In this document: positions 22,963-57,659 of the stretch, piece after piece | How the letters are laid out: every line of letters begins with the position of its first letter | Numbering within the stretch: the stretch's first letter is position 1 | NCBI GenBank assembly: GCA_001643675.2 | Contig: LSRY02000005.1 | Location: 682,001 to 746,000, forward strand | Direction: 5' to 3' | DNA: 64,000 nt | Origin: Monocercomonoides exilis PA203 | Taxonomy: Eukaryota; Protista; Preaxostyla | The notes under the pieces: model-generated | Told to the model about the DNA's origin: nothing | What the model saw: the letters and a program-made list of their open reading frames with translations, nothing else | Databases searched by the model: none | Made by a program: the position numbers and the translations under genes

Positions 22963-25900
22963 ATGATGAGTTGTTTTGTTTTTATTTTTTTGTTCTGCGC
23001 AAACTTATCCTGCGATGCTGGCGAATTCTATTTTCTTGAAAAACTCAGAAAGAACGACTTCAGAAAAGACGTTGTTGTTCGTGATATTCTTGAACCACTT
23101 TGCGATTGTGAAAGAAGTCGAGAGTGTCTTCCTGAGAACGCATGCCTTCATCGATTACGCGAAATTGACAAGGACAATAGAAGGCGCTTATATGGACTTG
23201 CATCCATTTCAGCACCAGTTTCCATCTGCAATTCTTCTTTGAGTTTTTATTCCCTTCAATTAAATTCCGAAGGAGACGATGCAGTTGCATCGTTGTCTGA
23301 CCAATCAACGTTTTTTGTGGGCAATTGTCTGCTTTCTTTGTCCCAAGTGTCGGGTGCCGATTTTGTTCATTCGTGGGGTGGGTCGATGTGCTTTTTCAAT
23401 TTGTCGTTGGCTCTGTCTGGACCGAACTGCCTTGTTCATTCGCTGGTTTCGTTTCCTGAAGCAAGCGCACAGCAGGCACATCGAAATAGCATCAAAATCA
23501 TGGACTCTTCGTTTTCGTCCTTCGGACTGTTTGATTCGCAACCGCTTGTCCAATCTTCGTGCTGTGATGTGATTAAGATTGAGCTCTGCTCCTTTGAAAA
23601 CATATCTCAAGAGCATGCAAGGAACAACGTTTCTTGTGCACAATGCTCGTCATTCACATTGGCATCGTGCATTATTTGCTCGATTGCCAACCCAACAGAA
23701 GGCTGCATTGCACCAAGAATATCAGATGGATCACTTCATTTTTTGAATTCTTCGTTTTTGAGATGCTCCAAAACTGCTGGCCAGAAAATTAATCACACAG
23801 GTTCGGAGAACACACTTGTGGACAACTGCTTGTATGAGAATGTTAACGGAACAAGCATATCGCATATTTCAACTGGTTCTTGCGTTGTGACAAATACAGA
23901 TTTTTTCAATTCAAGAGAATGCCTTTGCATAAATCCCAATTACTTTAGTGTTTTCAATTCCATCAACAACACATTTAATCTGTTAATAAAAAATAGTTTT
24001 GTGAACTGTATTTCTCCTTGTAAAGGAGAAGGCCCATTTACCATCTCAAATAACAATATGACATCTTGCGAAGCAATTTGGGGTGGAGGTTGCATTCATA
24101 TTCATAGAGGATTTACTAAAAACGACATCATATCAGATTGTTCATTTAAGAACTGCTTTGTAACAGGAAGAGATGTTCATTGCAATGGTGGAGGCGCAAT
24201 TTGGAACGGAGAGGGAGCAAAAGTGTCATATTCAAATGTTGCTTTTGAAAACTGCTGCGCCAATGAAACAGTTGGAGGGGCAATCTATTTTGATTCAAGA
24301 GATATATCATTGGTGCATCACAGTTCACTTTCTTTTTGCTTATTTGTTGATTGCGATGCACTTGGTGATGGAAAAGATATCTATGCAGAAAGTCCGTGGC
24401 AAGATATATTGAAAGAAAGTCAATTCAAATGGTGCTTGACAAGCAACTTTGCCGAGGCTAATCGACTCGTTTTTGGAGTTGGAGGGGATAAAAGCAGTTG
24501 GATAGGGAAAAATGAGATTTATGTTGACACCATGGGAAGGGATGAACCATTGTGCGGCTGGAAGACTAATCCATGCTTGACTGTGAGGAACTCTGTCCGT
24601 GATGCAACTTCCGCAAAGAAAGATCATCCATCTCGCATCAACATTAATGCAGGTTCATATGTGGAACAACCGCTTGTGATTGATTCTAAATATCTGGTTT
24701 TTGAAGGATCAAGCAATTATGGAACAAAGTTGAGTGCCAGTTCTGTGAATGCGAAAGCGCTTGTTGAAGTGTCATCTGGGTATGCCTCTATGCTCGGGTT
24801 ATTCATCGTCAGAAACTCTTCTGCGTCGACTGAACAGCCGTTGTTCTCTGTTTCTTCAGCATCTGGGGAGCTTGTGCTCTGCTTGTGCAAAATATCAGCT
24901 GAACCATCGCAAGTTTCTCCATTCACAACAGCATTTGCAGCAGTGTCGGCTGGTCTCTTGAATGTGTCGAGCACGACTGTTGAGTCGATGATATTTTCAG
25001 ATGTGTCAGCTGTTAGGATGGAGTCGTCGACACTGCACTGCTTCAATTTCGAGAATGCGAGTTTCAGAGGCATCACGCGAAGCGAAGGAAGCGGATCGGT
25101 GTTTGATGTGACTTTGGCGAGTGGGGATGAATTGGATTTGGATGAGGTGTCATTCAGCAGATGTGTGTGCAGCAAAGGGGATGGAGGGTCTGTGAGCTGT
25201 GTTCTGGAGGGAGGTGGGAGATTGATGCTTGGCACCACAAAAAGAATTGAAATGGAGGGATGTGGAGTGCCGCAGGACAGCATCAGGAAAGGAAAAGGGG
25301 GAGGAGTGCATCTGAAAGTGGTAGGGAGTTCGTCGAACTTTGCGATATGTGATGCTGGGTTTGGTGGATGCACAGCGTGGAAGGGAAACAACATATTTGT
25401 TGATGCGATCTCGTTGAGCGTGTCAATAACAAGGAGCACATTCGGGTTTGTGGAGACAGGGATGAGTGACGATGATCTGATGGGGTTTGAAGAGGAGTGG
25501 AGGGCAGATCCAGTTCCGCTTCTGGCATATCTGCAGGTGTTCTCGGGGGCAGCGGTTGTTGGAGGAGCGAAAAGGCGAGATTTCTCGGGGTGTGGAACAG
25601 CGAACTATCCGTGCGGGAGCATTGGATATGCAGCAGGACTTCGGTTTGGGAGCAGGAAAAGAATAATCACGCTGAATGGAGACTTTGAATGGACAGAGTC
25701 GGTGGTGTTTGATGCGTTTGGGTGGGAGGTGAAAAGTCCCACGAGAGGGCAAGAAACAAAAGTGTCGAGTGGAGGCACGAGCACAGCGGAAGGAATGGTG
25801 ACTGTTGAGATTGGATCGCTCATTGCGAACCTGAGTCTTTCAGCAGCTACGGAGCTTGGGAGGCATTCTTGGTTCATATTGTGCCAGTGTGGTGAGCTGT

Positions 25901-31900: not shown

Positions 31901-34900
31901 CGAGGCTGAATGCGATCTACGGGATGGACAGGACAAGCCACCAGAGCGACACGAATCTGATGGACTTCATCACGATCCACCAGGCAGACACGATCATCCT
32001 GTCGTCTGCTCCGTCGAAGAATGGGAGGAACGAGAGGCAGTGTGGGACGCTGAAGCTCCCGTGCCTGACGATGGGGTATGGGCTGAGCCATTTGACGAAC
32101 GATGTGGAAAGCCGGCTTCTTGTGGATGAGGAGTCGTTTGTGGAAAAGGAGATGGATCTGGAGGATGTTTCGGTGGCGTCTCGGAGGGATGATGCTTCGA
32201 AAGTTTCGATATTCCGAGACATTCCGCAAACAAGAGGGAGCGTGATAACAGCAAGAGGGAGTGTTTCTGTGACGAATATCGAGTTTTTCTTTGGCTCAGA
32301 TTTTTCGACAGCGCACCGTGTTTTGGTTGCAGCAGAGGCAGGAAGCCTGTCTCTGCTTTCGTGTAGCTTTGCGCAGTCACAGGAGGAAAGCAGCACACAA
32401 GCAATCGGGCTGGGGCTTATCTCAGCTGAAGGGGGAGAAGTGGAGATAAGCAAGATGAACATCAGCCGAATTTGGCTTTGTGGTGAATCGGCGATTGGAA
32501 TTGTTGATTCAGAAGAATCAGAAGAATCAGAGGGGAGAGTGGTGCTGTCAGAAATGAAAGTGGAAGATGTTGTTCTGGATGAGGGTGCATTCATTCTGAT
32601 TGAAGGAGCACGATCATTGTCCGAGCAGGCGAAAAATGGAAGAGAAAGATTAGTTGAACTGAAAGCGGTGTCTTTCAACAACGTTTCTTCTGCACAGGAA
32701 GAAGGAGGAGTTATTGGATGCTCAACGTTCAACGAAGGGATTTATTTTGACAACTGCAGTTTTGGGAACACATCGTCAAAGTCTGAAGGAGGAAGTGTAA
32801 TGACTTTTTGCAGGTGCAGCAGCGTGTCAATATATTGGAATGTGCTTCGAGGCGAGCTGGGTTATTCAGAAAGAGGTGGAAACAAGGAAGAAGCAGAGAT
32901 TTGCGGATGGGCAACTTCGGCTGTTTCGTTTGTCAACAGCACAGCAACGTTAAAAGACACCACAATTGAGAACTTTTCGAAAGGAGGGGTGAGAGTGACA
33001 GGCGGGCAGTTGCTCATCGAGAAGGGTGAGTTTGTGGGGAACGATCCAAGGATTGAGGGATACCCATCAACAAGAAGGAACATTGTGTGTGGAGGCAAAG
33101 GGAGCGTGAATGTTGGGAGTCTGAAAGGAGGAGATGGGCAGGAAAAGAATGGATCGCTTTGGATGCTGAATGAAGGATGCAAGCTGAGCGGGATTGTGGA
33201 AGAAAGGAAAGCTTCTTTGTTTGTGCCCACTTTGGAAAGTGTGGCTGTGGAAGAGGAAGGAGCAGAGTTGAAGGTGGCATTCAAAGGGCAACTTCTTTTG
33301 CCTTGCAATTTGTCATTTCGGGTGGTGACAGCCATCCGATCAGAAGCATTGGTGGTGCGATATGAGTTTGAATCAGAAGGGTTTGTCTCGGAAGATGAGA
33401 CTTGGGGCAAAATACCTTCAAATTCAATTCGAGAGGTGGAAGAGGAAGCAGAGGTAACCGTTTCAATTCTTTTTGGAGATAAAGAGGCACCATCATCAAC
33501 TGAAGCAATTATTCTGAAGAACAAAAGCAAGATACAAGCTGCTGGAGATGATATTATTGTTGAAGGAGGAAAAGAAAGAAAATCAATATGGCCTATTATT
33601 GTTGTTGTATTGGCAGTGCTGTTCTTGATAGTATTAGTTGGATTTATTGTGTTTGTTGTTCGATGGAGAAGAGCAAAGATAGAGAACAACGATTTGAGAG
33701 AGATTGTGAATGATAACATCAGAAAAGATCCAAAGGCGTTTGAGATGGTGACAATGGAGATGTCGCCAGAAGAGCAGTGGAGGAGAGCAGAAAGAGAGGC
33801 AGAGAAGAAGAATGAGGAGAGGATAAAGAAGAGGGTGTATGAGAAAAGCTTGGGACATTCAGAGTCATCAGAGCATTTGTTGAGTGAATGTGGATCAACT
33901 GAATATATCCTTGGAAGAGATTCAGACAAAATACCTCAATGGATGCTGGAGAAGATTGATGAGAAGGAAATTGAGGATGAGGAGACGAGAAAGAGAACAC
34001 CATCACCATCCATCTCATCCACTTCAACAACTGATTCAGATTCCACTTTTATCCGGCCAGAGAGCATGTGCCCGACCACCTCATCGATGTCGAATCTGGT
34101 GGATGCGATGGCCTGCTCATCGCCTCATGAGAAGCTGATTGTGGATCTGAGGGATTCGCTGTTCATGCTGCTGCATGGGCGGAACAAGACGAAGGAGATG
34201 GCGATCGGGACGGTGGAGGAGAGGATGGCGACAGGGGCGCAGATCCTGTTCTGGGTGGGGAATGTGGCGCTGCACTCGTTTGGGGAGATGGAAGTTCCGC
34301 TGGAGTCGCTGGACAGGCTGAGTCCGCACATTGTGCTGTTCTCGGAGCACATGGTGATCTGTGTTGTGATGCACTCGGGGAGTTCATCGTCAGAGGATTC
34401 GGACTCGTCGTCAGTGTCATCGCTGAGCGTTGTCTCGTCATCGTCGAATGTGTCGGTGATGAGCGAGAGGTTCACGGACTCGCCGCCGCCGTCGTCGGCG
34501 TTTGAGGATGAAGAAGGGGAAAAGGAGTATTTGCGGTGGAGGGCGCCGGAGCTACTGGAGGGGAGGAAGAAGCATGCGACAAAGAAGTCTGTTGTGTTTT
34601 CGATGGGGATGATGCTGTGGGAGTGTGTGGCGCTGGCGATCCCGTTTGGGGAGTATGATGCAGAAACGGCGGGAGAGAAGGTGAGGCATGGAGAGCGGCC
34701 GGGGGTGTGGCGGGAGGAGTGGGCGGCGGGGGAAGTTGTGGAGAGCATGGTGCGGCAGAAGGCAGGGGAGCGGGCGACGCTGGTGGATGTGAAGCGGGAG
34801 CTGTTCAAGCACTTTCCGTCGGGGACGGTGTTTGTGACGATGTCGGATGCAATCGACTGCTATGGGTCGGGGTGGTGTGGGAGTGGAGATGGCAGGGACG

Positions 34901-34971
34901 AGTCTGGAAGCAGAAGCAGAAGCAGAAGCGAGAGAGGAAATGAGAATGTGAAAGAGAATAAAGTTGGGTGA
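22963..34971 (+). CDS. Giant type-I membrane protein (4002 aa): Pmp-like/right-handed beta-helix ectodomain, single TM helix, cytoplasmic TK/TKL-like pseudokinase
   Basis: Uninterrupted 12-kb ORF. Hydrophobic N-terminus; recurring GGG/GGA(I/V) and FxxN/FxxC motifs; 8 CGx5-6(P)C caps; TM IWPIIVVVLAVLFLIVLVGFIVFVV at ~33586-33660 followed by RWRR; YLRWRAPELL..SVVFSMGMMLWEC..IPF. Confidence 0.85.
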   Translation: MMSCFVFIFLFCANLSCDAGEFYFLEKLRKNDFRKDVVVRDILEPLCDCERSRECLPENACLHRLREIDKDNRRRLYGLASISAPVSICNSSLSFYSLQLNSEGDDAVASLSDQSTFFVGNCLLSLSQVSGADFVHSWGGSMCFFNLSLALSGPNCLVHSLVSFPEASAQQAHRNSIKIMDSSFSSFGLFDSQPLVQSSCCDVIKIELCSFENISQEHARNNVSCAQCSSFTLASCIICSIANPTEGCIAPRISDGSLHFLNSSFLRCSKTAGQKINHTGSENTLVDNCLYENVNGTSISHISTGSCVVTNTDFFNSRECLCINPNYFSVFNSINNTFNLLIKNSFVNCISPCKGEGPFTISNNNMTSCEAIWGGGCIHIHRGFTKNDIISDCSFKNCFVTGRDVHCNGGGAIWNGEGAKVSYSNVAFENCCANETVGGAIYFDSRDISLVHHSSLSFCLFVDCDALGDGKDIYAESPWQDILKESQFKWCLTSNFAEANRLVFGVGGDKSSWIGKNEIYVDTMGRDEPLCGWKTNPCLTVRNSVRDATSAKKDHPSRININAGSYVEQPLVIDSKYLVFEGSSNYGTKLSASSVNAKALVEVSSGYASMLGLFIVRNSSASTEQPLFSVSSASGELVLCLCKISAEPSQVSPFTTAFAAVSAGLLNVSSTTVESMIFSDVSAVRMESSTLHCFNFENASFRGITRSEGSGSVFDVTLASGDELDLDEVSFSRCVCSKGDGGSVSCVLEGGGRLMLGTTKRIEMEGCGVPQDSIRKGKGGGVHLKVVGSSSNFAICDAGFGGCTAWKGNNIFVDAISLSVSITRSTFGFVETGMSDDDLMGFEEEWRADPVPLLAYLQVFSGAAVVGGAKRRDFSGCGTANYPCGSIGYAAGLRFGSRKRIITLNGDFEWTESVVFDAFGWEVKSPTRGQETKVSSGGTSTAEGMVTVEIGSLIANLSLSAATELGRHSWFILCQCGELSMADCSLKCSSSGNAAFGFGFIKINGGSLLLSRFSTASQIGFGSGSLISLSGAGMLNCDGCTMNSIRKTSGNGGCISIEKNSLLGNSGCREITIDGCTFSDCCVGGNGGEGGEGGGVSAWLGENDILAVNGSSCFEECLAPSEEGSGGKGGGMCLRCGDESFSFEIRNEVEFSKVKGNKAEFGKDVFVGCESGVLLSQMINSSSLGFFDSMKQPTDALGLSGSENGSDSVVIPLHAYLCRLQSEIITDSGNGVDHTHCGYASFACLSIDHCVGSRISDTLHNIKVVSRSVIQQEISISSTSANIYSEALVPVSVRDTGGTTQEGLVMCLSPVFLSNLSLSVPRAFGAARKAFLLCSSSLSIANCCVECSSENAGDPVSFSVIFVKRGDLVVSGFTMEVGVAFTTSPIWIWGYNAVTMENSSVCGMRRMNGDGGCLYINEANGDGKSITIQKCNFSGMCDEGNGIRGGGIMGNVGSGNALSVKSTSFENCMVPSDGSENGGKGLGGGMYLCLKESIGSLAFDNISFRSCNAWKGKELFVDGEDLRQIVGDWLQCFKTETILAEDMMGFERSTTNREFHIPLMLYFRAFEEPCFIGGAEEKSLDYTGCGFSDYPCGTLPYGGFVRFGDSKAHLRLTDRFCFADAIILSSQEMDIDAGANGTEINVLSDGAGEGEGLIETSNAISFSGIAFNVSTTFTAAERKSLFLCCGSALSLVDCSVSAQSKKIGFGYVIVRGGSLHVLRGVLNEIELVGAPVVELSGSGSRCTMEDVEWNNLKTGSAEGLVVAKSSSHVEMKNSKVSGPTKFENHGVLFVEESSSAAVEKSNFSLLTRNEGNGVVIVVRVGGGKTLSVDCCSFTTISCMASGSQGGSVIASVSANGELLFNNNTVEESKVRKADGLGGGLHMEFLSSEVGYSMKNNIFRSNDAMLGYDVYLVCPAPRMTIDRNKWAGSATEGQEEETMWVIDPSFPDGTDTLLKYLFPRADEIIYVNTLNGQTDKCGADDYPCVELWYASRKMTEEKRILRVLSSCELSGAIEKENVSITIEGKGEDGSRVIVGKEGHLKMGVGTTLTTLTISKIGFELPGASDFAELVEVGVGKTYFVECTFGSADPEAPAETSMRIITGRGGRISLDGVTIKNMEYKADYGIFLSGEVGCTFDSVEVSNIRSSGKGMVVGEGGTEVLVNELRSTNCTFGNGGFVVLKKVKMLKWKNGTSMTDCRNEGGNGGCGFISVEGESDVEMNGTSIRSCSVNEEGGRGGGLYLEISENRLVRMKLTEMGFAENCAFEGKDMFVLSTDVNATVVRERFAFQLQNERNESVVDLKGTDDALLGGSVVDLLLFLIQRKENTILVSRGGMDILGCGSAEFGCLSFWRGYENIDLEAPNRVMQIDTGANIKNHFDLSSFKVVSRKADERCVVLFEDALEGGEEKSVIRNTKELKLELVQLSLPSSFTNNENVLLHSSSADSCLSLNGCTFKCSSASDLEFCLICSEGGDVQLESCDFSSLSFSSTPVLLNSSCEIIGCNFSSISAKWSQKGGAVCVELVGEATFSMSQTETVGCGCSEEQGKGGFAFVECQGALVENPFVFGEDVSFAGHKAQRGKNIFIWAGDLNKTVTLSTFCFDFRKSGEDELLFCGRDLVWEDTTLLRFLEAFTSATIFVSSGGYDIMRCGSAEDPCRSVWKGMRQMEGGAGQKWMKIADETTVQDMFVLSNFVFEHEETEEDSRGMLIFASRTADRSDAGIRSEGDVQLKRISVVVSEGFWNEQQYSLVGKSGLIGMSGCSFVAETRGDVAAKVGLLAMESGVVNVRKLVVENVMSEVGVFAMGKGCECVMQEVVGSGCTFSGEGFVKIASGGNRKEGKNGVGCSVAMNESTFQLISRSSNGPAIISSAGCVAELSIRGCAFDSCKAVGSEKGGGVFEELESEGALSMIKSSVIQCGCDNGRGKGGGIYIYASFEGALPFVFEKMTFKGNSAKVGNDVFVECVDIERQINETQFCFDLRETAYTRLNAIYGMDRTSHQSDTNLMDFITIHQADTIILSSAPSKNGRNERQCGTLKLPCLTMGYGLSHLTNDVESRLLVDEESFVEKEMDLEDVSVASRRDDASKVSIFRDIPQTRGSVITARGSVSVTNIEFFFGSDFSTAHRVLVAAEAGSLSLLSCSFAQSQEESSTQAIGLGLISAEGGEVEISKMNISRIWLCGESAIGIVDSEESEESEGRVVLSEMKVEDVVLDEGAFILIEGARSLSEQAKNGRERLVELKAVSFNNVSSAQEEGGVIGCSTFNEGIYFDNCSFGNTSSKSEGGSVMTFCRCSSVSIYWNVLRGELGYSERGGNKEEAEICGWATSAVSFVNSTATLKDTTIENFSKGGVRVTGGQLLIEKGEFVGNDPRIEGYPSTRRNIVCGGKGSVNVGSLKGGDGQEKNGSLWMLNEGCKLSGIVEERKASLFVPTLESVAVEEEGAELKVAFKGQLLLPCNLSFRVVTAIRSEALVVRYEFESEGFVSEDETWGKIPSNSIREVEEEAEVTVSILFGDKEAPSSTEAIILKNKSKIQAAGDDIIVEGGKERKSIWPIIVVVLAVLFLIVLVGFIVFVVRWRRAKIENNDLREIVNDNIRKDPKAFEMVTMEMSPEEQWRRAEREAEKKNEERIKKRVYEKSLGHSESSEHLLSECGSTEYILGRDSDKIPQWMLEKIDEKEIEDEETRKRTPSPSISSTSTTDSDSTFIRPESMCPTTSSMSNLVDAMACSSPHEKLIVDLRDSLFMLLHGRNKTKEMAIGTVEERMATGAQILFWVGNVALHSFGEMEVPLESLDRLSPHIVLFSEHMVICVVMHSGSSSSEDSDSSSVSSLSVVSSSSNVSVMSERFTDSPPPSSAFEDEEGEKEYLRWRAPELLEGRKKHATKKSVVFSMGMMLWECVALAIPFGEYDAETAGEKVRHGERPGVWREEWAAGEVVESMVRQKAGERATLVDVKRELFKHFPSGTVFVTMSDAIDCYGSGWCGSGDGRDESGSRSRSRSERGNENVKENKVG

Positions 34972-35473
34972 TAACAAATAAAATTAAACGAAATGAAGAA
35001 TTGAAATGAATTTGAAAGCGATCTTTTCTCTTCTTGATTTTGGATGCACTCCTTTTTGGAGAGCCACTTTTTGTTTGTTCTGTTGTTTGCGTTGTTTGAG
35101 AGTGTATGTATTTACCGTTTTGGGTTTCTGTTTTGCGTCGAATGCATGCATGTATGTATTATTGTTGAGATTATGTTATGAGAACCATTGAACCCTTTTG
35201 CTTGAAGCTTGAAAAAGAACAAAAATGTTCAATTTAAATTCTTTGAATGAACACAACGTTCTTTGTCGACTTTTTGGCAAAGGGGATGTTTGCAAGAGCG
35301 AAACACATTTTCTTTGTTTGAGAGCTTTAATTTTGACTTATCTGTTATTTGAGTATTTTTTTGACGTTTTGAGTTGATTCAACATTTCTTACTTTTTCAA
35401 TCAAGTTATTATTCAATAAAAATTTATAATGGTTGCTCGAACATTTTTTTCTTTAAGTTTCTTTCTTTTTCCA

Positions 35474-42913: not shown

Positions 42914-43080
42914 CCAATATTGAAAAATAATGATGGGTAATTTTCAATGAATTCTTTTTCCATTAATTTTAATAATTTCACAAAATGTGTTTAAAAATAT
43001 TTTAAACAGACATACAAGAAAATGCAATATTTTGTACGAATTTTTTGAAATGAATGAATGATTTTTTTTTTTGAATTTTT

Positions 43081-48015: not shown

Positions 48016-48603
48016 AGAGGGGATGGGAGTGAGCGAGGGAGGGGAGTGTGTGGCAATGGCGATGAGGGAATGCGATTGGATTGTGGTATGTTTTGCTGTA
48101 AAAAGATGCTTTCAACTTTTCAAAAAGTTATTGAAGTGGAGTGGAGAGAAGAGAAGAGAAGTGAAGCGATGGTTATGTTAATGGAGCTTTGAAAAAGCAA
48201 TTGATGGAATTCAATTACAATTTTGGCGGTTGTTTGAAAAGGGAAGAGTTTTAGATGGATGTTTCATTATTCTTTGAACAGAATTATTTCAAATAAGATT
48301 TGCTCGGTTTACATGTGTTTTTTTACAATTTTTGCTTTAAGATTTCGCCGCATTGTATGGCGAAAATAGCAAAGTCTGTAAATAGAACTTATCTTTACAT
48401 GAATGAAACATTTTGCAGGAGCAAGTTTATGTTAGTCTTTCTTGCTCCTTCGGAATGAAAAGAAAGAATAAACTGAGCTCATTATCATTGTCTGTAACCT
48501 TCATGGTTGCAGTTATCATCGAGTTTCATGTATTCTTTTATGCTCTTCTTATTCTGCAACTTGTCCACTTTTGAGAACTCCTAAGTTCGTTGTGTATGTT
48601 TGC

Positions 48604-48621
48604 TGTGTGTGTGTGTGTGTG
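48604..48621. repeat. (TG)9 microsatellite
   Basis: Direct read. Confidence 0.9.
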
Positions 48622-49592
48622 TTTTCTTGAACATCAACGAATTTAAAGAAAGGATTGTTCGATTGAAAGCGAAATCCTTTCTTCCGAAGAAATGAGTTGC
48701 ACTATTTATTTTGGATTGTCAAACGAAGTAAAGCCTTTTGTGGATACATCTGAAGCTTCTGATATTTTTGACACACTTTTCTTTAAATGAAAAGCATTTC
48801 TTTTTGATTGAAAGAGTAAAATGATCCAGTGAAATTGACAAGAATATCAACAAATGCGTATGTAAATTGTGGATACAGATTAGCTTTCTTCTTTTTGTTT
48901 TTACATAAATAAAAGTTGATGCCATTTCAAATTTTATATTTATTGACTTTACAGAGTATGATCTGAATGTTATTCAATTTTGTTTTTTGAGCCAATGGGC
49001 TTGTGATAAAGATTTGAAATGTTTTTCAAGTATTGTGAAGCGTGTTGAATACAACTTAACATTTTATCGTTTTTGACAATCTTTAGCGTTTTGTTTATCA
49101 TTTATTTGTGTTGTATTTTATTTTTTCTCCATCTATTTAATTCTATGTTTCACATTTATTTTATAATTTTCTCAAAATACTTATTTACATTTTTTATTTG
49201 ATAGCGCCTTTTAAGTTTATTTTAATCTTTTCTTGAATTATCGTTTCATTTTTCATAAAAGTCTTCAACTTGTCTTTTTTCTGATTAGCATTCAATTCAA
49301 TTTATCCCGTTTGTATTTGGCAAACGGTCAATGATTAATATTTTAATTAAGTTAAAAATTCAAAAAGAACAATTTTTTTTTTTTTTAAATATCGCTTCTG
49401 CTTGAAACTTATAAGCAAAAAAACGAATAGACCACCATAAATTCGACGAACAAATTTTAACAAATATTGCAATATATGTGAAAACGATGAACGCATATGA
49501 TTTGAATTCAACTAAAATTTTATTTAAAAGAAAAGGAAAAATATATTGGGCGCAGGAATTTTTATTTTCAGTTTTTTCTTTCATCTTCTTCC

Positions 49593-52500
49593 ATGGCGAG
49601 GTTCTCCACCAGCGCAAAAGTTGCATTCAATATTGTTGCTCTGATTTTGGTTGTTGTAAATTGCGGCAATGACAGAAGCATTGCTGTTAAACATAATCAA
49701 CAAGAAATGAATTGGGAGATGCCAGTAAGCACGATCAGCGTTGAAAACAACAGTAACAAATACTACAATAAAAAAGGCATAGGTGCAGCAAAAGTCATAT
49801 TTTCATCAGGTGATCGTGTCAGTTGTGCTCGAACAAATGTGAATATCGTCAATGCCTCGTTGTGTGTGAGCGATCTCGTCATGGAACCTCTCAGTGGCTG
49901 CGCATTTCTCACTGCACAACACCACTCATCGTGCACCATTTTCTCCTCCACCTGCCGAATCCACGCAGATGCCAGCCACCCACTTTTCCTCTCTTCCCAC
50001 AGCTCCCTCTTTCTCACAAACTTCTCCTTCACCATCCCTCAACCAGCCATCCTCTCCTTCCCCCTCTTCTCTCTTCCTCAAAATCTCCTCCCAGATGCAC
50101 ACTCTCCAATCCCTGCCTCCTTCTCCATCTTCCATTCCTCTTTCTCCTCTTTCATCTCCCTTCACAATCCCTTCCTTTTTTCTCCTTCTGTATCCTCTTC
50201 TTTTTCCCTTCTTCATCGCCATCTCCAAATCCACCTCGATCTCCACCTCTCTGACACACTCTTCACAAACATCACCACTGCACCACAATCCACACACTCC
50301 ATTCCTGCCAAACACACACACACACACAACTCATTCACCACTACCACAACCACAATCACCACCACAATCACCACAAACACAATCCCCTCCTTCTCCCTTC
50401 ATTCCTCTCTCTCCATCCACTCAACCATCTTCCTCTACACCCACAACCCCATCGATGGTGCCATTCTTCCCAACCTCAACAGCCCATCCACTTCTCTCTC
50501 TGCATTCAACACTTCTTTTCTCCACCAAACACGCTCTTCACCAAATGATCCTGCGAAATATATTGGATCCGAAACTCAAAGAAAGAAATTAAGTAGATTG
50601 CCATTATCTGATTTGAATAGCTATCTCTTTGAATGGTGCGAATGGAATAATTCAAATAGTGGAAGTGCATGGGGAGGTGCACTTTATATTAACTACACAA
50701 ACGCAAATATCGCCATCATATCGTGCTCGTTTAATAAATGCTCTACAACTAATGAAGGAGGAGCATTATTATGTTGGTATTTATTAAATGTCAGCATTAC
50801 TAAATCCAACATAACAAATTGTTCTGCTAATCATGGAGGAGCTGCTAATATCAGATATCCTCAATCATCCTCTGCTTGGACATTCTCTGAAAACAAAGTG
50901 GAAAGCTGTAAAATAACAAGTTGGTGTGGAACTGGCTGGTATTTTGTACTCGATAACATGCCGTCAAATGCTCAATTTCTGTTTTCCAAATGTAAATGTA
51001 TCTCAAATACTGGTGGAAATGCTGCTGGCTCATTAACATTTTTTAATCCTCCTAAAAATAAGCCAAACCAATTTTCAATCAATGATTGTCAGTTTATAAA
51101 TAACATATTAACTGATTCTTCAACGCGTGGAGGCGCCGGAATTTATTTGGATAAAACTTTTTCTTGGATGAATGGAATAAAATTCATCACATTCTGTTTC
51201 TTTGATGGCAACTCTGCAAAAAATGGAAGAGGAAATGATGTATTTTTCAATGGAAGTGATATTACCCAATCTCCATTCGAGAATTGTGGCTCAACAACCC
51301 AATCAAAAAGAGTATGGAAAAATGGAACTGCTTCAAATATCTCTGTCAACAGCTGGTTGCCTTTTATCAGCCAGTACAGAATAGTTGCAAACAGCGGAAG
51401 TGATGTTGATGGTTGTGGGGTACCTCAACAGAATCCATGCTCCACAATCGAGTATGCAATCTACGGCTTATTCTTTTACAAAGAAGCTTCTATCACCCTT
51501 CTCTGCTCCTCTTTTGCTCCAGCTCAAATACTAACCTTCAGCACAGTTGACACTAAAATCACTGGAAATGGCACAACTGCCACCACCATCGCCTCCAGTG
51601 GCATTCCCCAACCATCAAACTCACATTCACAGTCATCACAGTCATCATCATCATATTCATCATATTCATCATATTCATCATTTTCATCATTTTCATCTGC
51701 ATCTTCTTCACCAGATCCATCTGCCTCGTCTGCCCTCTTCCAACAGACCCAGGGCTCCCTCACAGTCTCTGCCCTCGCCATCGCCCACAACTCCACAAAC
51801 CCCATCACCCCCATCCTCTTCCACCTCTCCGGTAACTCCCCTTCCCTCAACCTCAACACAACCACCATCACAGGAACAACCCCATCTTCATCATCAATCA
51901 CAACCACCCTCTTCTTCCTCACTGCAGGCTCCCTCGCCCTCAACCACACAGCAATCACCAGTCTCTCCCTCAACAGCCAAAGCATCTTCTACCTCACCTC
52001 CCTCACAGCTCCACTCACCCTCAACTTCTCCAACATCACCGATATCACCTCCACCGCCACCCCCGCCAGCTGTGTCCTCTCCTCTGCCACCTCCCCTGCC
52101 CTCTCCCTCTCCATCACCAACTGCACCATCACCAACATCAACACGACTCCACAAAACCAACAGACTGCCACAGATGGCGGATGCATCTCATTCGCCTCAT
52201 CTGCTTCTGCCAACTCGTTTTTGGTGAGTAGCACCACCTTCTCCAGCTGCTGTGTGAGTGAGGATACAAGTTCTGGAGGAAGAGGCGGTGCTCTCATGAT
52301 CGAGTTCAAGGATGATTCAGAAGTGTCAGAATCCTCCTTTTCCATCACCAATATGGTGTTTTCAGCCAACAAGGCCAGTGTCGGAAGAGATATGTATTTT
52401 GTGTGTGAATCCCTTGTAGCTTCTGTGAAAGAGCCCTTGTTCACTTTCATGAAAAGCATCACTCAAAAAGACAACTCGGTTGTTGGGCGCGATAGAACGC

Positions 52501-55500
52501 AAATGTTTAGCAATTGGGATGTGGACCTGTTTATATTTTTGGACGGATATACAGCTGATTCTGTATATGTTGATGGAGTAATTGGAATGGAGAAGATGTA
52601 TTGTGGTCTGGAAAATGCTCCATGTTTGAATATGAATTATGGGATGGGGCGTTTGAAGAGAACACAGAATATTAAGCAGGAAATTATTTTATGTGCAAAT
52701 TCTTCTGTTACTGGATATGTGGATGTGAGCGGGATGAGTGTAAAGTCCAAATCCGAGACAATTGTTGGTATCGAATGCAAAAGGGAAGTAAGCGGCTCTG
52801 AACAATGCGTTATGAAATCATTATCGATTACAGAAATTCAGTTCGTTGGGATTGTTGTTCCATCAAGTTTTAACAGAACAATCACATCAGTTGTCGAATC
52901 AAGCACTCAAAATGGGGAGTTGCACATGAAGAACTGTGAGATGAGCGTTATTGGAGGGAAACAAAACACAATTGTATTTTCCTTGATCAAATCAACGGGA
53001 AAAATTGTTGAGCTGGAGTTTGTCACGATTTCAGATGTGAAATCATCTGTCTCGCTGTTTTCATTTTCTCCTTCATCAGGAAATATGAATGAAGGAGAGA
53101 ATGAAGGAGAATACAAAGTGAACCTGTTGAATTGTTCAATGGAAGGATGCAGTTTTGGTGACTCCTCATCTGGTGAATCTCCATTGATAACATCTTCTTC
53201 TGTTTTGTTTGAAAACAGCAACTTTTCAAACATTGAGAACAAAGGCAGCGAAGAAGGAGGCGTTGCAAAAGTGATATTGCAAGGGAATGAAAAACTGGTG
53301 ATCAAATCAACAAATGTGTCATCTTGTTCACTTTCATCGGACAATGGAAAAGGAGGATTCTTGTATCTGGATTCTCAAAATTGTTTGAATGAAAAACCAT
53401 TTCTTTTTGATGTTGACGTAACTTTTGAGAGCAACAAAGCAACCATTGGAAAGAACATGTTCATTTTGGGAAAGGATTTTAATTCTTCTGTGACAAATGA
53501 GACATTTGCCTTCGATTATCCATCAATGAAGGATGATAACAATTTGTTTGTTGGGAGTGATGATTTTCATCAAGAAAAAGATTTGTTCATGTTCCTCGTT
53601 CCATACAGCTCATTTGAGATATTTATTTCATCAGAAGGATTTGATGTGGTGCGTTGTGGAAGTGAAGAAGAGCCTTGCTTCACAATGTGGAAAGGGATGA
53701 AAAACGTAAAAAAGGAGATTGGAAATAAAACAATTCAAATTGAAGGATCAACAATTATTCGAGATTCATTCAATGTGTCCAATTACCAGATAAAAAAAGC
53801 TGTATCAATAGGAGAAGAAGATATGAAAGCTATCTTGAATTTTGAAAAGGCAATTGGAAGTCAACTGGAATATTTCATGGCGAATGAAATTCATCTTGAA
53901 TTGACAAATATCCAACTTCAACTTGCATCGGGATTTGACAACTCAGCCAAAACGATAATTTCAAATACAGCTGGTGAGTTGGTGATGACTGGATGTTCAT
54001 TCCATTCAGAAGCAGGAGTGAACAATGGATTTGATTGTGTATTTGTGGATGTGATTGGAGGAAGTGTGGAAGTGAATGATTTGTCGATGGAATCGTGCAA
54101 TGTTGGAAACAGTATTTTTGTCATTCACGATGCTGGAATAACTTGTCATTTGATGAATGTTCGAGTGGAATCGTTGAATGAAAGTGGAGGATGTATTTTG
54201 TCAATCAAAGGATCTGAATCAGGATTGAAGATAAATGAAGGAAGTGAAGAAGGAATAAATCTTCAAATTGACAAATCATCATTTTCAGGAGTGAAGAGAA
54301 GTGACAATGGAGCAAGCATTTTGGATTCAAAAAGTGAGAAAAAGATTTGTTTGGTTGTGAATGAGAGCAACATCACAGAAGACAAAGCAGAAACAAGTGA
54401 AAAAGGAGGGGCAATATTCTTCACATTGGGTGCATCAGGATCAATGAAGATGATTGAATCGACAATCAGTCATTGCAGCTGCACCAATGGGAAAGGAGGA
54501 GGGGTGTATTTGGTAACAAAGGAAACAGGGTTTCTTAATTTCACATTTGTGGGAATGAAGTTCAGCGCAAACACAGCAAAAGCGGGGAATGACATTTTCA
54601 TTGAATGTTTCAACATCACATCTCAGATCAATGAAAGACAATTTCAGTTTGATCTTCGAGAAGGCAACTTCAATCGATTCAATGCGATATATGGAATTGA
54701 TAATTGTGAACACAAAGAAGATACAGATCTGATTGATTTTGTAGCTATCTATCAGAGTGACACAATTGTTGTGAGCAGTGCGAATGGATCGGATGAGAGG
54801 CAATGTGGAACAAACACTTTTCCATGTGATTCGATTGATTATGGGCTGATGCACTTGACATCAGATTTCATTAGTCAAATGTTCATTGTTGAGGAGAGTG
54901 TGATTGATGGAGAGATAAATCTGGAGGAGATGAGCCTGAGTTCGAAGAGCAGAGGCTTGTGTGAAGTTGAAGTGAAATCAGGGATTGAAAAAACAAGAGA
55001 GTCATTGGTGACAACAACAGGAACAGTTTCATTGCTGAGAATGAACTTTGTATTTAATACAAATTTCACATCCACACATGAATCACTGATGTCACCAGAA
55101 GGAGGGATTCTTGAAATCATGAATTGTTCATTCACCTCAAAACAATCGGAGGATGGAAGAAATGCTGCTTTTGCAAACATACCACTTCATCTAATAAATA
55201 TGGATAAAGGAGAATTACAACTTGATGGATGCTCAATATCAAATCTCATTCTTCAAAAATCTTCAATATATCTATCATCATCACTTCCATCAGTGATTTA
55301 TTTATTTGAGATCAGCAATTCAACAGTTTCTCATTCGCTTGTTGAAATTATTGAATGTGGACAATTAAACATGGAAAAGTTTCATTCAGAAAATATCACA
55401 GTTGAGGGAAATGAAGAATCATTGATATCTTGCTTGTCAATGAAAAAGACAATTCAATTGACAAATTGCACAATTGGTGGAGTCAGTTCAAAGACTACAA

Positions 55501-57659
55501 AAGGGAAATTGATGAAATTGGAGAATTGTTTGGATGTGGAAATGGACAGTTGCATTTTCGATGGAAATTCAATAGAAAGAAATGAACAGAATATCAATGA
55601 GGAAGAAGAGATGTGCAGATGGGATGGATCTCTTGTTGATGTTGTGAAGAGTTCTGTTTTGATGAAAGATACAACAGTCTCGCATTCAGCAGAAGGAGGA
55701 ATAACATTGAGTGGAGGGACAATAACTATTTATGATGGAAGATTTGAGAACAATAATCCATCAATTGAAGGATATCCATCATTGAGAAGAAATATCATTT
55801 GTTCAGATGCAGGAACATTGAATGTGGTGAGTTTGAAGGGAGGAGATGGAGTTTTGCCAAATTCATCACTTTGGATATTGAATGATGGGTGCAGTTTTGA
55901 GGGGATTGTTTCTGAAAGAGCATCTCCATTTTTCATTCCTATTCTGGAGAGTGTGGAAGCAAAAGAAAGAACAGATAGAATGAAGCTGACATTCAAAGGA
56001 ATGCTTCTTGTTCCTTGTAATCTGTCATTCTCAATTGTGAAGAGAAAGGGAGAAGAGAAAGAGATTGAAAATTATGATTTTGATTCAAATGGATTCTTGT
56101 CAGAAAGAGAAGTTGAAGGAAGTGTGACAAAAGATCTCATCAGCAGTTGCGGAGATGAAATCGAGGTGAGTGTGCATGTTTTGTTTGGAAACGCAGAATC
56201 TCCATCTTTAACACAGTCATTCATTTTGAAGAATGCGAGCATCACTCCACCAAAAGGAGATGAAAAACTTGTTGAAAGTGGAAAAGAAAAAATGTCATCA
56301 TGGGCATTGATTGTGATTGTGATATTTGCTGTATTGTTTTTGATTGTACTTATCATTGCAGTGATTTCAACTGTTCGATGGAGAAGTACCAAGAATGAAA
56401 ATAAAGATCTGAAAGAGATCGTGAATGACACGGTGAAAAAAGATCCGAAGTTGATTGAAATGGTGACGATGGAGATGTCTCCCGAGAAGCAGTGGAGGAG
56501 AACAGAAAGAGAGGCTGAAAAGAAGAATGATGAGAGGATGAAGAAAAGAGTGTATGAGAAGACAATGGTGCATTCGGAATCTGAAGAGCATCTTCTATCT
56601 GAGAGTGGTTCCACTGAATATATCCTTGGAAGAGATTCAGATAAGATCCCAGAATGGATGCTGGAGAAGGTTGATGAAGAGGAGGAAACAAGAAAGCGAA
56701 CACCATCGCCATCTATTTCATCCACTTTAACCACAGACACTTCAGATACTGAATCCACCTTTGTTCGAGGAGAGGATCTGTGCCCAACCACTTCATCGAT
56801 GTCGAATCTGGTGGATGCGATGGCCTGCTCATCGCCACACGAGAAACTGATTGTTGACTTGAGGGATTCGCTGTTCATGCTGTTGCACGGAAGGAATGCC
56901 AAGAAGGAGATGGCAATAGGAACTTTGGAGGAGAGGGAGCAAACGGCTGCTCAGATTCTCTTCTGGGTGGCGAATGGAGCCATTCACTCATTTGACGAAA
57001 TGGAAAATCCTCTATCTTCTCTGGAAAATCTCAGTCCTCATATTGTGTTATTTTCCGAGCATATGGTCATCTGCATTGTGATGCATTCTGATTTCCTTTC
57101 ATCCGATGATTCAGATTCATCCTCCATCTCTTCATCAACAGTTGTGACATCAGCAAGTGATGATGATAAGGGGGAGGAGGATGACTCTCTTCCTTCATCA
57201 GCCTTTGAGGATGAAGATTATTACAAAAAAGAATGCCTGAGATGGAAGGCACCCGAACTGCTGATGAACAAGAAGATGGGGGCAACAAAGGAGTCGGTTG
57301 TCTTCTCGATTGGGATGATGCTGTGGGAATGCCTAACGCTCCAGATACCGTTTGGAGAATATGAAGCAGAAATCGCTGGGCAGAAGATTCAACGAGGAGA
57401 AACTCCAAATCTTGATGAAATTAATGCATCATCTCCCTTCTTCGCTCAGTTGATCTCTGCCTCTATTTCGTCCCACTCATCGCAGCGTCCGAGCCTCACC
57501 GATATGAAGCGCAATCTTATTGGGCATTTTCCACCAGGAGCGGCAATTCTGACCGTTTCAGATGCAATAGATCTTCAATATGCTTCAAATGGGAACGAAG
57601 AAGGTGGCTCGTCTCGCATTGGAATTGGAAGCGAAACAGTGAAAAACATTTTGTCCTGA
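49593..57659 (+). CDS. Giant type-I membrane protein (2688 aa), paralogue of 22963-34971: beta-helix-like ectodomain, TM helix, TK/TKL-like pseudokinase
   Basis: Uninterrupted 8-kb ORF. Signal peptide (VAFNIVALILVVVNC); WGGALYI/GGAIF and FSAN motifs; 4 CG..PC caps; TM WALIVIVIFAVLFLIVLIIAVISTV at ~56301-56375; CLRWKAPELL..SVVFSIGMMLWEC..IPF. The cytoplasmic tail aligns closely with the first paralogue. Confidence 0.85.
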   Translation: MARFSTSAKVAFNIVALILVVVNCGNDRSIAVKHNQQEMNWEMPVSTISVENNSNKYYNKKGIGAAKVIFSSGDRVSCARTNVNIVNASLCVSDLVMEPLSGCAFLTAQHHSSCTIFSSTCRIHADASHPLFLSSHSSLFLTNFSFTIPQPAILSFPLFSLPQNLLPDAHSPIPASFSIFHSSFSSFISLHNPFLFSPSVSSSFSLLHRHLQIHLDLHLSDTLFTNITTAPQSTHSIPAKHTHTHNSFTTTTTTITTTITTNTIPSFSLHSSLSIHSTIFLYTHNPIDGAILPNLNSPSTSLSAFNTSFLHQTRSSPNDPAKYIGSETQRKKLSRLPLSDLNSYLFEWCEWNNSNSGSAWGGALYINYTNANIAIISCSFNKCSTTNEGGALLCWYLLNVSITKSNITNCSANHGGAANIRYPQSSSAWTFSENKVESCKITSWCGTGWYFVLDNMPSNAQFLFSKCKCISNTGGNAAGSLTFFNPPKNKPNQFSINDCQFINNILTDSSTRGGAGIYLDKTFSWMNGIKFITFCFFDGNSAKNGRGNDVFFNGSDITQSPFENCGSTTQSKRVWKNGTASNISVNSWLPFISQYRIVANSGSDVDGCGVPQQNPCSTIEYAIYGLFFYKEASITLLCSSFAPAQILTFSTVDTKITGNGTTATTIASSGIPQPSNSHSQSSQSSSSYSSYSSYSSFSSFSSASSSPDPSASSALFQQTQGSLTVSALAIAHNSTNPITPILFHLSGNSPSLNLNTTTITGTTPSSSSITTTLFFLTAGSLALNHTAITSLSLNSQSIFYLTSLTAPLTLNFSNITDITSTATPASCVLSSATSPALSLSITNCTITNINTTPQNQQTATDGGCISFASSASANSFLVSSTTFSSCCVSEDTSSGGRGGALMIEFKDDSEVSESSFSITNMVFSANKASVGRDMYFVCESLVASVKEPLFTFMKSITQKDNSVVGRDRTQMFSNWDVDLFIFLDGYTADSVYVDGVIGMEKMYCGLENAPCLNMNYGMGRLKRTQNIKQEIILCANSSVTGYVDVSGMSVKSKSETIVGIECKREVSGSEQCVMKSLSITEIQFVGIVVPSSFNRTITSVVESSTQNGELHMKNCEMSVIGGKQNTIVFSLIKSTGKIVELEFVTISDVKSSVSLFSFSPSSGNMNEGENEGEYKVNLLNCSMEGCSFGDSSSGESPLITSSSVLFENSNFSNIENKGSEEGGVAKVILQGNEKLVIKSTNVSSCSLSSDNGKGGFLYLDSQNCLNEKPFLFDVDVTFESNKATIGKNMFILGKDFNSSVTNETFAFDYPSMKDDNNLFVGSDDFHQEKDLFMFLVPYSSFEIFISSEGFDVVRCGSEEEPCFTMWKGMKNVKKEIGNKTIQIEGSTIIRDSFNVSNYQIKKAVSIGEEDMKAILNFEKAIGSQLEYFMANEIHLELTNIQLQLASGFDNSAKTIISNTAGELVMTGCSFHSEAGVNNGFDCVFVDVIGGSVEVNDLSMESCNVGNSIFVIHDAGITCHLMNVRVESLNESGGCILSIKGSESGLKINEGSEEGINLQIDKSSFSGVKRSDNGASILDSKSEKKICLVVNESNITEDKAETSEKGGAIFFTLGASGSMKMIESTISHCSCTNGKGGGVYLVTKETGFLNFTFVGMKFSANTAKAGNDIFIECFNITSQINERQFQFDLREGNFNRFNAIYGIDNCEHKEDTDLIDFVAIYQSDTIVVSSANGSDERQCGTNTFPCDSIDYGLMHLTSDFISQMFIVEESVIDGEINLEEMSLSSKSRGLCEVEVKSGIEKTRESLVTTTGTVSLLRMNFVFNTNFTSTHESLMSPEGGILEIMNCSFTSKQSEDGRNAAFANIPLHLINMDKGELQLDGCSISNLILQKSSIYLSSSLPSVIYLFEISNSTVSHSLVEIIECGQLNMEKFHSENITVEGNEESLISCLSMKKTIQLTNCTIGGVSSKTTKGKLMKLENCLDVEMDSCIFDGNSIERNEQNINEEEEMCRWDGSLVDVVKSSVLMKDTTVSHSAEGGITLSGGTITIYDGRFENNNPSIEGYPSLRRNIICSDAGTLNVVSLKGGDGVLPNSSLWILNDGCSFEGIVSERASPFFIPILESVEAKERTDRMKLTFKGMLLVPCNLSFSIVKRKGEEKEIENYDFDSNGFLSEREVEGSVTKDLISSCGDEIEVSVHVLFGNAESPSLTQSFILKNASITPPKGDEKLVESGKEKMSSWALIVIVIFAVLFLIVLIIAVISTVRWRSTKNENKDLKEIVNDTVKKDPKLIEMVTMEMSPEKQWRRTEREAEKKNDERMKKRVYEKTMVHSESEEHLLSESGSTEYILGRDSDKIPEWMLEKVDEEEETRKRTPSPSISSTLTTDTSDTESTFVRGEDLCPTTSSMSNLVDAMACSSPHEKLIVDLRDSLFMLLHGRNAKKEMAIGTLEEREQTAAQILFWVANGAIHSFDEMENPLSSLENLSPHIVLFSEHMVICIVMHSDFLSSDDSDSSSISSSTVVTSASDDDKGEEDDSLPSSAFEDEDYYKKECLRWKAPELLMNKKMGATKESVVFSIGMMLWECLTLQIPFGEYEAEIAGQKIQRGETPNLDEINASSPFFAQLISASISSHSSQRPSLTDMKRNLIGHFPPGAAILTVSDAIDLQYASNGNEEGGSSRIGIGSETVKNILS

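Follow-up and report, generated by a model that had tools for sequence, protein, structure and literature searches.

Two members of a large Monocercomonoides exilis family of predicted type I membrane proteins with beta-helix ectodomains and a kinase-derived tail

Two long uninterrupted open reading frames, located on a 64,000-nucleotide stretch of the genome of Monocercomonoides exilis PA203 (contig LSRY02000005.1, positions 682,001 to 746,000; hereafter the window), raise the question of what kind of protein they encode, how many relatives these proteins have and what they may do for a mitochondrion-less gut protist described as a commensal (PMC6759080). An earlier note, made from the letters of the window, had read them as paralogous beta-helix receptors with divergent heads, stalks of variable length and a near-constant non-catalytic tail. 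The two genes, A and B, are composed of the following parts, given in window coordinates.

22963..34971, plus strand: gene A, the 8-module family member, an uninterrupted ORF of 4002 aa
22963..24516, plus strand: gene A putative signal peptide (aa 1-~20; hydrophobic N-terminus judged by eye) and head (aa 1-518)
24517..32004, plus strand: gene A predicted beta-helix modules 1-7, each opened by a CG-x(4-6)-PC cap (placed by cap positions; fold inferred from the gene B module model)
32005..33576, plus strand: gene A module 8 (partial; placed by cap position) and conserved membrane-proximal domain (47% identity to gene B membrane-proximally)
33577..33660, plus strand: gene A transmembrane span, aa 3539-3566, from hydropathy windows
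33661..34968, plus strand: gene A predicted cytoplasmic tail, with the kinase C-lobe remnant at aa 3849-3946 (window 34507-34800)
49593..57659, plus strand: gene B (MONOS_3173), the 4-module family member, an open ORF of 2688 aa
49593..51377, plus strand: gene B putative signal peptide, Ser/Thr/Pro-rich tract and head (aa 1-595), from the ORF translation
51378..54767, plus strand: gene B predicted beta-helix modules 1-3, of which module 3 (aa 1343-1725, window 53619-54767) was the one modelled
54768..56288, plus strand: gene B module 4 (N-terminal two thirds) and membrane-proximal domain, from hhalign to the module profile
56289..56372, plus strand: gene B transmembrane span, aa 2233-2260, from hydropathy windows
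56373..57656, plus strand: gene B predicted cytoplasmic tail, with the kinase C-lobe remnant at aa 2545-2642 (window 57225-57518)

The shared order of parts that had been described for this intronless pair was confirmed, both frames being open throughout and each encoding a single hydrophobic span. The cap motif occurs eight times in gene A (aa 531, 877, 1237, 1585, 1976, 2337, 2645 and 3027) and four times in gene B (aa 608, 1004, 1355 and 1738), and module 4 of gene B aligned with columns 4-256 of the module profile (hhalign, Prob 99%, E 7e-18). The ectodomains of A and B contain 44-46 N-x-S/T sequons and 64-147 Cys, whereas the tails have only 2-3 and 5-7 of these, respectively, an enrichment that points to the extracellular character of the outer part; gene B also harbors long Ser/Thr-rich, mucin-like tracts. 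Further long uninterrupted ORFs of the window are found at 37900-41913 (minus strand) and 45274-48015 (plus strand), so that the lack of introns may set the pair apart less clearly than the earlier note supposed.

Proteins A and B are collinear across 1861 aa with 41% identity. Their heads, previously called barely alignable, share 25.3% identity, which is the level of the shuffled control (mean 24.1, maximum 27.8). Identity reaches 31-37% in the modules (A residues 2633-3014, for example, match the modelled B module at 35% identity, E 8e-71), 47% in the membrane-proximal region and 75.9% in the tail core. The rise in similarity from N- to C-terminus therefore holds from heads to tail core, but it does not continue to the end of the protein: over the last ~90 residues identity drops back to 38%. 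Likewise, the AT-richness ascribed to the heads applies to gene A (GC 0.40 in the head vs 0.495 in the modules) and not to gene B (0.416 vs 0.409). No common stretch or shared promoter element was found when the upstream sequences of A and B were compared.

To what extent the pair is representative was answered by searching the 82.3-Mb, 101-contig M. exilis assembly. For the 11-residue tail peptide PTTSSMSNLVD, 907 coding sites were counted in the genome (447+460; reversed control 0), in agreement with the large family that had been predicted and against the alternative of only a few copies genome-wide. All 93 scored tail matches had E values below 1e-209 and lacked internal stops, and for 82 of them the open frame extends over 1700 aa or more; most copies have stop-free frames of 2000-4200 aa, and for about 12% of the best tail matches the open frame is short. 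Across the annotated members of the family, the number of caps varies from 1 to 8 and is mostly 2-5. Judged by sequence, A and B, with 8 and 4 modules, represent two architectural classes within a family of ~900 predicted type I membrane proteins and are ordinary members of it.

The heads did not prove to be the hypervariable singletons that had been supposed, since both are shared with many paralogues: the head of A recurs in 3 copies at 79-80% and 9 copies at 52-57% identity, and that of B in 70 or more copies across the genome at 55-79%, of which the 11 most similar share its contig. They appear to be subfamily markers, tied to architecture class and gene length. The last ~110 aa of the A head look like a module's C-terminal cap (Prob 83%, E 9e-6 by hhalign against the module profile), and the end of the B head matches the same profile (Prob 84%, E 8e-6). 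The nearest annotated paralogues of gene A, P0099 and P0080, share 60-87% identity along the ectodomain, and family-wide identity is 52-59% at the membrane-proximal residues 2040-2150 of gene B. All named protein matches belong to M. exilis; word-index protein searches with the tail and module profiles retrieved M. exilis proteins only, plus one weakly matching beta-helix protein (E 5e-5), and two short patterns, the most conserved tail peptides, found no relative in JGI metagenome contigs, which is weak evidence of absence.

In the literature the family is known only as "tyrosine kinases" overlapping "unclassified repeats" (PMC6759080, PMC8767320), an equation that is putative. Protein tyrosine kinases were reported as the largest gene family of M. 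exilis, with "332 tyrosine kinases" published (PMC6759080), and genes overlapping 'unclassified repeats' were described in the assembly paper (PMC8767320). The published model of MONOS_3173 (gene B) is truncated, lacking the signal peptide and head, and several annotated relatives start where residues 300-600 of gene B align. Such loss of the N-terminus from gene models seems common in the family, so that published family counts and localisation predictions are probably biased. Assuming an average frame of ~2700 aa, ~900 copies would amount, as a rough estimate, to ~7 Mb or ~9% of the genome, which would be a great deal of sequence for a single protein design.

Whether these proteins are kinases at all depends on the tail. 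The one fold element that can be recognised in it is part of a TKL-type kinase C-lobe, namely its C-terminal half. The Pfam profile PF07714 matched gene B with 30.9 bits and gene A with 22.7 bits (cut-off 23.1), only at profile positions ~160-258; PF00069 matches were also seen in the tails, and TKL kinases of the PDB matched the tail solely from the APE motif to helix I (E 6e-6 for the family tail profile vs PDB kinases). The tail also aligned with the polo-like kinase encoded in the window (hhalign, Prob 95.8% over 90 columns), and an ESM Atlas feature search returned kinase clusters with a score of 0.96. No profile match was found upstream of APE, where the catalytic-loop and DFG region of the polo-like kinase failed to align. 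None of 169 tails has an HRD (H[RYLGC]D) or DFG (D[FLY]G) motif between the post-membrane helix and APE, and none (0/169) has a G-x-G-x-x-G loop or a VAIK-like ([VIL]A[VIL]K) motif. The places of HRD and DFG read L-x-N-LSPH-IV and IVMHS (judged by eye and by an HMMER stretch of -1.4 bits, below threshold). The position expected for the activation segment is occupied by an acidic, Ser-rich insert of ~55 residues. An AlphaFold2 model of the tail, built with 61 paralogous tails, had a pLDDT of 43.5, exceeding 60 only at residues ~330-400, which is too low for a fold to be read from it.

With no glycine loop, VAIK lysine, HRD or DFG in any of the copies examined, the tail would be unable to transfer phosphate and is, on these motifs, predicted to be catalytically dead. 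This agrees with the TK/TKL C-lobe signature and the non-catalytic tail of the earlier note. The published annotation implies active receptor tyrosine or TKL kinases, some members being named 'putative protein tyrosine and serine/threonine kinase' within what is reported as the largest gene family (PMC6759080), and the PF07714 and PF00069 matches lend this some colour; the confinement of the match to one part of the profile, the failure of the catalytic regions of a real kinase to align and the absence of catalytic motifs from 169/169 tails refute it, and we consider it to have next to no probability.

The tail, ~430 aa long with ~130 invariant columns, owes its likeness among copies to strong purifying selection. 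Median dN was 0.09 and median dS 1.04 (465 pairs; omega ~0.1), and with silent sites thus near saturation homogenising gene conversion was rejected as the main cause of tail constancy, conversion tracts being present but local. In the last module, the sole ectodomain segment measured, omega was 0.25-0.44 in close pairs, with no excess of amino-acid change. The copies are mosaics with sharp exchange breakpoints, both at the ectodomain/membrane border and within the tail; divergence along the gene is non-uniform and segment histories are incongruent, against the congruent trees and uniform divergence that would have contradicted the earlier proposal. The genes diversify via local duplication, change in module type or number and segmental exchange, and they lend themselves to the study of how modules are shuffled in what may be a receptor family.

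Transcript evidence consists of assembled bulk RNA contigs from one study (four runs), which are blind to strand and level and may include DNA carry-over. They cover gene B from the ATG onward, with none on the 200 bases before it, and match it with 0 mismatches at 50524-50938, which goes against the lack of expression that would have contradicted the earlier proposal; coverage is low and fragmentary vs a neighbouring gene.

These data bear on two further explanations. According to the first, the copies are decaying repeat DNA, selfishly amplified or carried by transposons and devoid of cellular function, as their overlap with 'unclassified repeats' (PMC8767320) and the ~12% of best tail matches in short open frames might suggest; stop-free frames of 2000-4200 aa in most copies, RNA coverage and purifying selection on tail and ectodomain despite saturated silent sites contradict it, and for the bulk of copies an omega far below 1 refutes it, leaving it exceedingly improbable. 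According to the second, they are variant surface antigens comparable to the Giardia variant-specific surface proteins, one or few of ~900 genes being on per cell and switched to evade host or microbial attack. A large family with a variable exterior, a constant tail, frequent segmental exchange and low, fragmentary bulk coverage of gene B would fit such a system, but bulk RNA contigs are unable to show exclusivity, A and B have no upstream sequence in common, omega is below 1 in the last module and M. exilis is regarded as a commensal of the gut (PMC6759080). We hold this explanation to be improbable.

What the exterior may do is suggested by the fold of its modules. AlphaFold2 modelled module 3 of gene B with a pLDDT of 91.6 and a pTM of 0.90, and the outer modules, of ~310-390 aa each, are accordingly assigned to the right-handed parallel beta-helix (pectin-lyase-like) fold, as had been predicted for the ectodomain. 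Foldseek matches in the PDB all had the same fold but were weak (E >= 2e-3), and the assignment was decided by an exhaustive VIA-align search, in which the model superposed over the whole domain (model range 1-383) on right-handed beta-helix enzymes and tailspikes (Z 21-23, 285-302 residues at 3.3-3.7 A). In the ESM Atlas, the clusters most similar to the model consist of cell-surface beta-helix proteins, the closest with PF02415 in 100% of its members (TM 0.64/0.72) and a DUF1565 (PF07602) cluster also near in shape (TM 0.62/0.69). The likeness to Pmp adhesins claimed previously is therefore one of predicted structure and does not extend to sequence: Chlam_PMP (PF02415) matched only 4 of 111 modules (best E 0.051) and neither whole protein at E up to 1, and DUF1565 matched none of the 111 at E up to 0.1. 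No autotransporter beta-barrel is present at the C-terminus, which consists instead of the single hydrophobic span and the kinase-derived tail.

The best structural matches (glycoside hydrolases, PL6 lyases, epimerases and phage depolymerases), together with the mucin-like tracts of gene B and the very large copy number and genome share, could also be read as signs of a surface coat or of surface-anchored carbohydrate-active enzymes, serving as glycocalyx or in polysaccharide digestion, with the tail used for sorting or anchoring only. However, across the alignment of 111 modules only Cys and Gly are invariant, and near-invariant columns are limited to C, G, P, F, N, A and L; no conserved acidic or basic residue was found (single modules could still differ), nor were conserved catalytic groove residues as in GH28, PL6 and PL9 enzymes. 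Moreover, a tail of this length, with its invariant columns and omega of ~0.1, goes far beyond the needs of a sorting signal. A coat or enzyme role is thus considered unlikely, though to be taken seriously.

The reading that we find reasonably probable is that of a beta-helix receptor or scaffold as a whole, binding outside and docking partners through a dead-kinase tail; a receptor or adhesin function is what we infer from the architecture. The beta-helix chain would project from the cell surface and may bind glycans on bacteria, food particles or host mucus, and the invariant tail would act as a docking scaffold that links binding to a common cytoplasmic machinery serving uptake, adhesion or signalling, probably being phosphorylated on TPSPS and acidic Ser-rich stretches. 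Two points count against this receptor reading: an omega below 1 in the measured ectodomain segment, without the sign of diversifying selection expected of a recognition repertoire, and the fact that the beta-helix fold is also typical of enzymes and purely structural coats. A more elaborate version, in which continual exchange of heads, modules and tails supplies a combinatorial repertoire of ~900 receptors, each cell showing a restricted subset that discriminates gut bacteria or host surfaces through one invariant non-catalytic hub, is doubtful at best. The design itself, with predicted tandem beta-helices outside and a selected, apparently dead half-kinase inside, changes the reading of the kinome, repeat content and surface biology of a model amitochondriate, and the tail, reduced to part of one lobe and kept almost invariant, is a tractable pseudokinase case.

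Among known systems, the family resembles the Giardia variant-specific surface proteins in comprising hundreds of paralogues with a variable exterior, one span, a conserved cytoplasmic end and recombination. The Giardia proteins have CXXC-rich ectodomains and a 5-residue tail, CRGKA, whereas the M. exilis tail is ~430 aa and kinase-derived. With chlamydial Pmp and DUF1565-type bacterial surface proteins it shares a right-handed beta-helix built on GG[AG]-hydrophobic turns, but its members are predicted type I membrane proteins of a eukaryote, carry capped domains in tandem and lack an autotransporter barrel. Animal and plant receptor pseudokinases (HER3, ROR1/2, RYK, PTK7; PMC13259870) are likewise membrane receptors whose kinase-like cytoplasmic domain acts without catalysis as a scaffold, the role proposed here for the M. 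exilis tail. The kinase fold of these receptors still has both lobes in full and is altered by point substitutions, whereas the M. exilis tail has no recognisable N-lobe, catalytic loop or DFG and carries the ~55-residue acidic Ser-rich insert. The Entamoeba transmembrane kinases (TMKs) have Cys-rich CXXC-repeat ectodomains, are far smaller, number ~90 members and contain a whole kinase domain, with catalytic residues in many; unlike them, and by architecture only, the M. exilis family has beta-helix chains, half a C-lobe and ~900 copies. In the same architectural sense, the TMKs of Entamoeba histolytica (PATMK, EhTMKB1 family), some of which are implicated in phagocytosis and show selective expression within a subfamily, offer a parallel: they too form a large family of type I proteins in a gut protist, in which a variable ectodomain is joined through one span to a kinase-type cytoplasmic domain (PMC2211552, PMC2880585).

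Both uninterrupted ORFs described in the earlier note are present in the window, and the anatomy it proposed for their products, with a beta-helix exterior, a dead kinase interior, a very large family and non-uniform divergence, proved largely correct.

22963-34971, + strand, ORF of 4002 aa (gene A)
49593-57659, + strand, ORF of 2688 aa (gene B)

The cap motif CG-x(4-6)-PC, which opens each ectodomain module and follows a short V-x-S-x-G-x-D strand, is present in eight copies in A and four in B, at a spacing of about 310-395 residues. Both proteins have a hydrophobic N-terminus, as judged by eye, and a single hydrophobic span about 430-460 residues ahead of the C-terminus. BLASTP aligned residues 2217-3997 of A collinearly with residues 878-2684 of B (41% identity). 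By region, identity amounted to 25.3% in the heads, which precede the first module (shuffled control mean 24.1, maximum 27.8), 31.6, 36.7 and 31.3% in three corresponding modules, 47% in the membrane-proximal domain, 52% in the membrane span, 75.9% in the tail core and 38% in the last ~90 residues; the N- to C-terminal similarity gradient is real but not monotonic. The AT-richness ascribed to the heads holds for A, relative to its own modules, but not for B. The C-terminal end of A is unusually divergent (approximately residues 3906-4002, window 34680-34968), its last 200 residues being at most 57-59% identical to any retrieved family member, whereas its ectodomain has relatives at 60-87%.

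The predicted very large size of the family was borne out by a degenerate DNA pattern encoding the invariant tail peptide PTTSSMSNLVD, which matched 907 sites on both strands of the genome (447 forward, 460 reverse; reversed control 0), two of them in the window, one in A and one in B. Searching the genome with the B tail gave 93 scored matches, the best 93 of 1431 first-look candidates, all with E < 1e-209, 74-86% identity and no internal stops; for 82 of these 93 the surrounding open frame is 1700 aa or longer, and frame lengths cluster at ~2.6-2.75, 3.0-3.1 and 4.05-4.2 thousand residues. Every named database match came from M. exilis, a scan of JGI metagenome contigs with two short tail peptides revealed no relatives, and tail and module searches, which depend on shared short words, returned M. 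exilis only, bar one weak unnamed beta-helix protein. Protein tyrosine kinases have been reported as the largest gene family of this organism (332 counted, 320 tyrosine-kinase-like; PMC6759080), with genes overlapping unclassified repeats (PMC8767320). Neither paper describes the architecture reported here, and a full-text literature search combining M. exilis with pseudokinase, beta-helix or receptor yielded no paper on such proteins among its best matches.

The heads of A and B are each shared with many paralogues. The A-type head recurs at 79-80% identity in three copies on the same contig within ~115 kb upstream. Nine genes carry it at 52-57%, seven of them with open frames of 3870-4052 aa, and some 30 others resemble it at 25-30%. 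At least 70 genes share the B-type head at 55-79% identity; most of them encode about 2650-2750 or 3000-3100 aa, and the 11 closest copies are all on contig 47, which contains the window. The heads are subfamily markers rather than unique cassettes, and their recurrence by gene length and contig ties head type to architecture class and chromosomal neighbourhood, the hallmark of local duplication. Left of the window, at a distance of 17-49 kb, two A-type heads with identical scores occupy opposite strands of contig 47 (633077-634624, +; 665164-666711, -), and a third copy lies at 591709; the arrangement resembles an inverted duplication of family genes adjoining the window.

Gene B corresponds to MONOS_3173, annotated as an "uncharacterized protein" of 2116 aa. 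The published model starts at 51250 (window region 51250-51372) in a different frame and enters the long ORF at residue 594 via a predicted intron, thereby losing 593 residues and the signal peptide. Since RNA contigs 51317-51502 and 51331-51487 cross the supposed intron unspliced with 0 mismatches, and the missing head is kept in the open frames of at least 70 paralogues, this model is very probably truncated. Several annotated relatives also begin at a point aligning with B residues 300-600. The RNA evidence comprises assembled contigs from four libraries of one 2024 study, which carry no information on strand, ends or level. Across the four libraries, 27-29 of the 30 bins spanning window 49000-54999, head included, carried exact or near-exact short contigs, and no contig fell at 49400-49599, just before the ATG of B; this single-study, contig-based pattern is consistent with modest transcription of B that starts close to its ATG. 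The upstream neighbour (45274-48015, +, and on to ~49300) is a 913-aa uninterrupted ORF without any Pfam match. It gave in each of the four runs a contig of 4.6-4.7 kb ending at 49205-49301 with a mean word depth of 55-84, which makes it an apparently well-expressed gene with a long 3' end. Another uninterrupted ORF (37900-41913, -; 1337 aa) showed neither a Pfam match nor similarity to the receptor family. Long Ser/Thr/Pro-rich low-complexity tracts in B (residues ~100-330 and ~640-830; window 49900-50540 and 51500-52080) have a strong coding-strand pyrimidine bias (GC skew -0.45) and very high RNA word depth, probably summed over paralogues.

An alignment of 61 cytoplasmic tails averaged 72% identity per column, with about 130 invariant columns. 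Alignment to kinases, whether from Pfam, the PDB (best matches CTR1, ILK, ZAK/MLT, TAK1 and BTK) or the window's own polo-like kinase, was confined to the stretch from the APE motif to helix I, and a language-model search assigned kinase features to the tail (score 0.96). HRD-, DFG-, glycine-loop- and VAIK-like motifs were absent from all 169 tails in the region bounded by the post-membrane helix and APE, in agreement with a dead kinase; the expected places read L-x-N-LSPH-IVLF and MVIC-IVMHS (by eye and from a below-threshold HMMER stretch), and APE itself follows a Ser-rich, acidic stretch some 55 residues long. The polo-like kinase gene itself (12432-17696, +; Pkinase and POLO boxes) has a kinase domain beginning at profile position 89, so that one or more further exons should lie upstream.

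Selection and exchange were analyzed in 31 copies over a segment comprising the final ~500 residues of the ectodomain, the tail and the 3' flank. In sliding windows, pN was 0.045-0.15 in the tail (pS 0.49-0.65) and reached about 0.4-0.6 in the last module. With pairwise medians of dN 0.09 and dS 1.04 for the tail, purifying selection on the protein, not recent copying, is the main reason why tails are alike. The ectodomain segment, with omega 0.25-0.44 in close pairs, is moderately constrained, without an overall replacement excess. A variant-antigen role, one of the two main rivals to the binding function favoured below, seems quite improbable. Divergence is indeed non-uniform, both in the regional identities of A and B and in segment histories that differ within the same gene pair. 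The convergent neighbours L025 and L026 (genome contig 36, 536339-545303) are 93-100% identical over a 2.1-kb tract that starts shortly before the membrane span, takes in the tail and ends 685 bases beyond the stop, against ~55% outside it (ectodomains and distal flanks). Ectodomain dS is 0.07 against 0.40 for the tail in L011/L016, while in L003/L004 the last kilobase is 95-99% identical versus ~50% in the ectodomain. B and its neighbour L002, 60 kb away, share ~80% identity over most of the segment, rising to 91-98% across the final ~600 bases of coding sequence and ~590 bases of 3' flank. In protein comparisons, B has different closest relatives along its length; some relatives match at 82-91% over residues 701-900, 19-29% over 901-1100 and 77-87% beyond, a drop between high flanks that points to a different module type in that slot.

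The AlphaFold2 model of B residues 1343-1725 (pLDDT 91.6, pTM 0.90), derived from an alignment of 111 paralogous modules, most of which share 17-40% identity with the query, consists almost entirely of short strands. An exhaustive structural search superposed the whole module (Z 22.9-21; 285-302 residues at 3.3-3.7 A) on right-handed parallel beta-helix proteins, namely a glycoside hydrolase, PL6 lyases, a mannuronan epimerase, a polygalacturonase, phage tailspikes and the Vag8 passenger, which bears out the beta-helix exterior. In both heads, the final ~110 residues resemble the cap at the C-terminal end of the module profile (Prob 83-84%), and B 1726-2232 has a module-like start (Prob 99%) followed by a distinct membrane-proximal domain, 52-59% identical family-wide. 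The ectodomains carry 44-46 N-glycosylation sequons and 64-147 cysteines. The other main rival, a coat or enzyme role, is in our view unlikely; among the 111 aligned modules, the invariant positions are two Cys, Gly and a few hydrophobic residues, and the lack of any invariant acidic residue argues against a conserved enzyme site. Surface binding is the reading we consider reasonably probable: the ectodomain would attach to glycans or microbes at the cell surface, and this binding would be coupled to the non-catalytic tail as a docking part. The nearest ESM Atlas clusters to the module are cell-surface beta-helix proteins; in the first, every member has the Chlamydia Pmp repeat, and another is DUF1565. 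At the sequence level, four of the 111 modules matched Beta_helix and only four the Pmp model (best E 0.051), so that "Pmp-like", as the modules had been called, describes their shape and not family membership: they resemble Chlamydia Pmp proteins in fold, but their sequences scarcely match the Pmp model.
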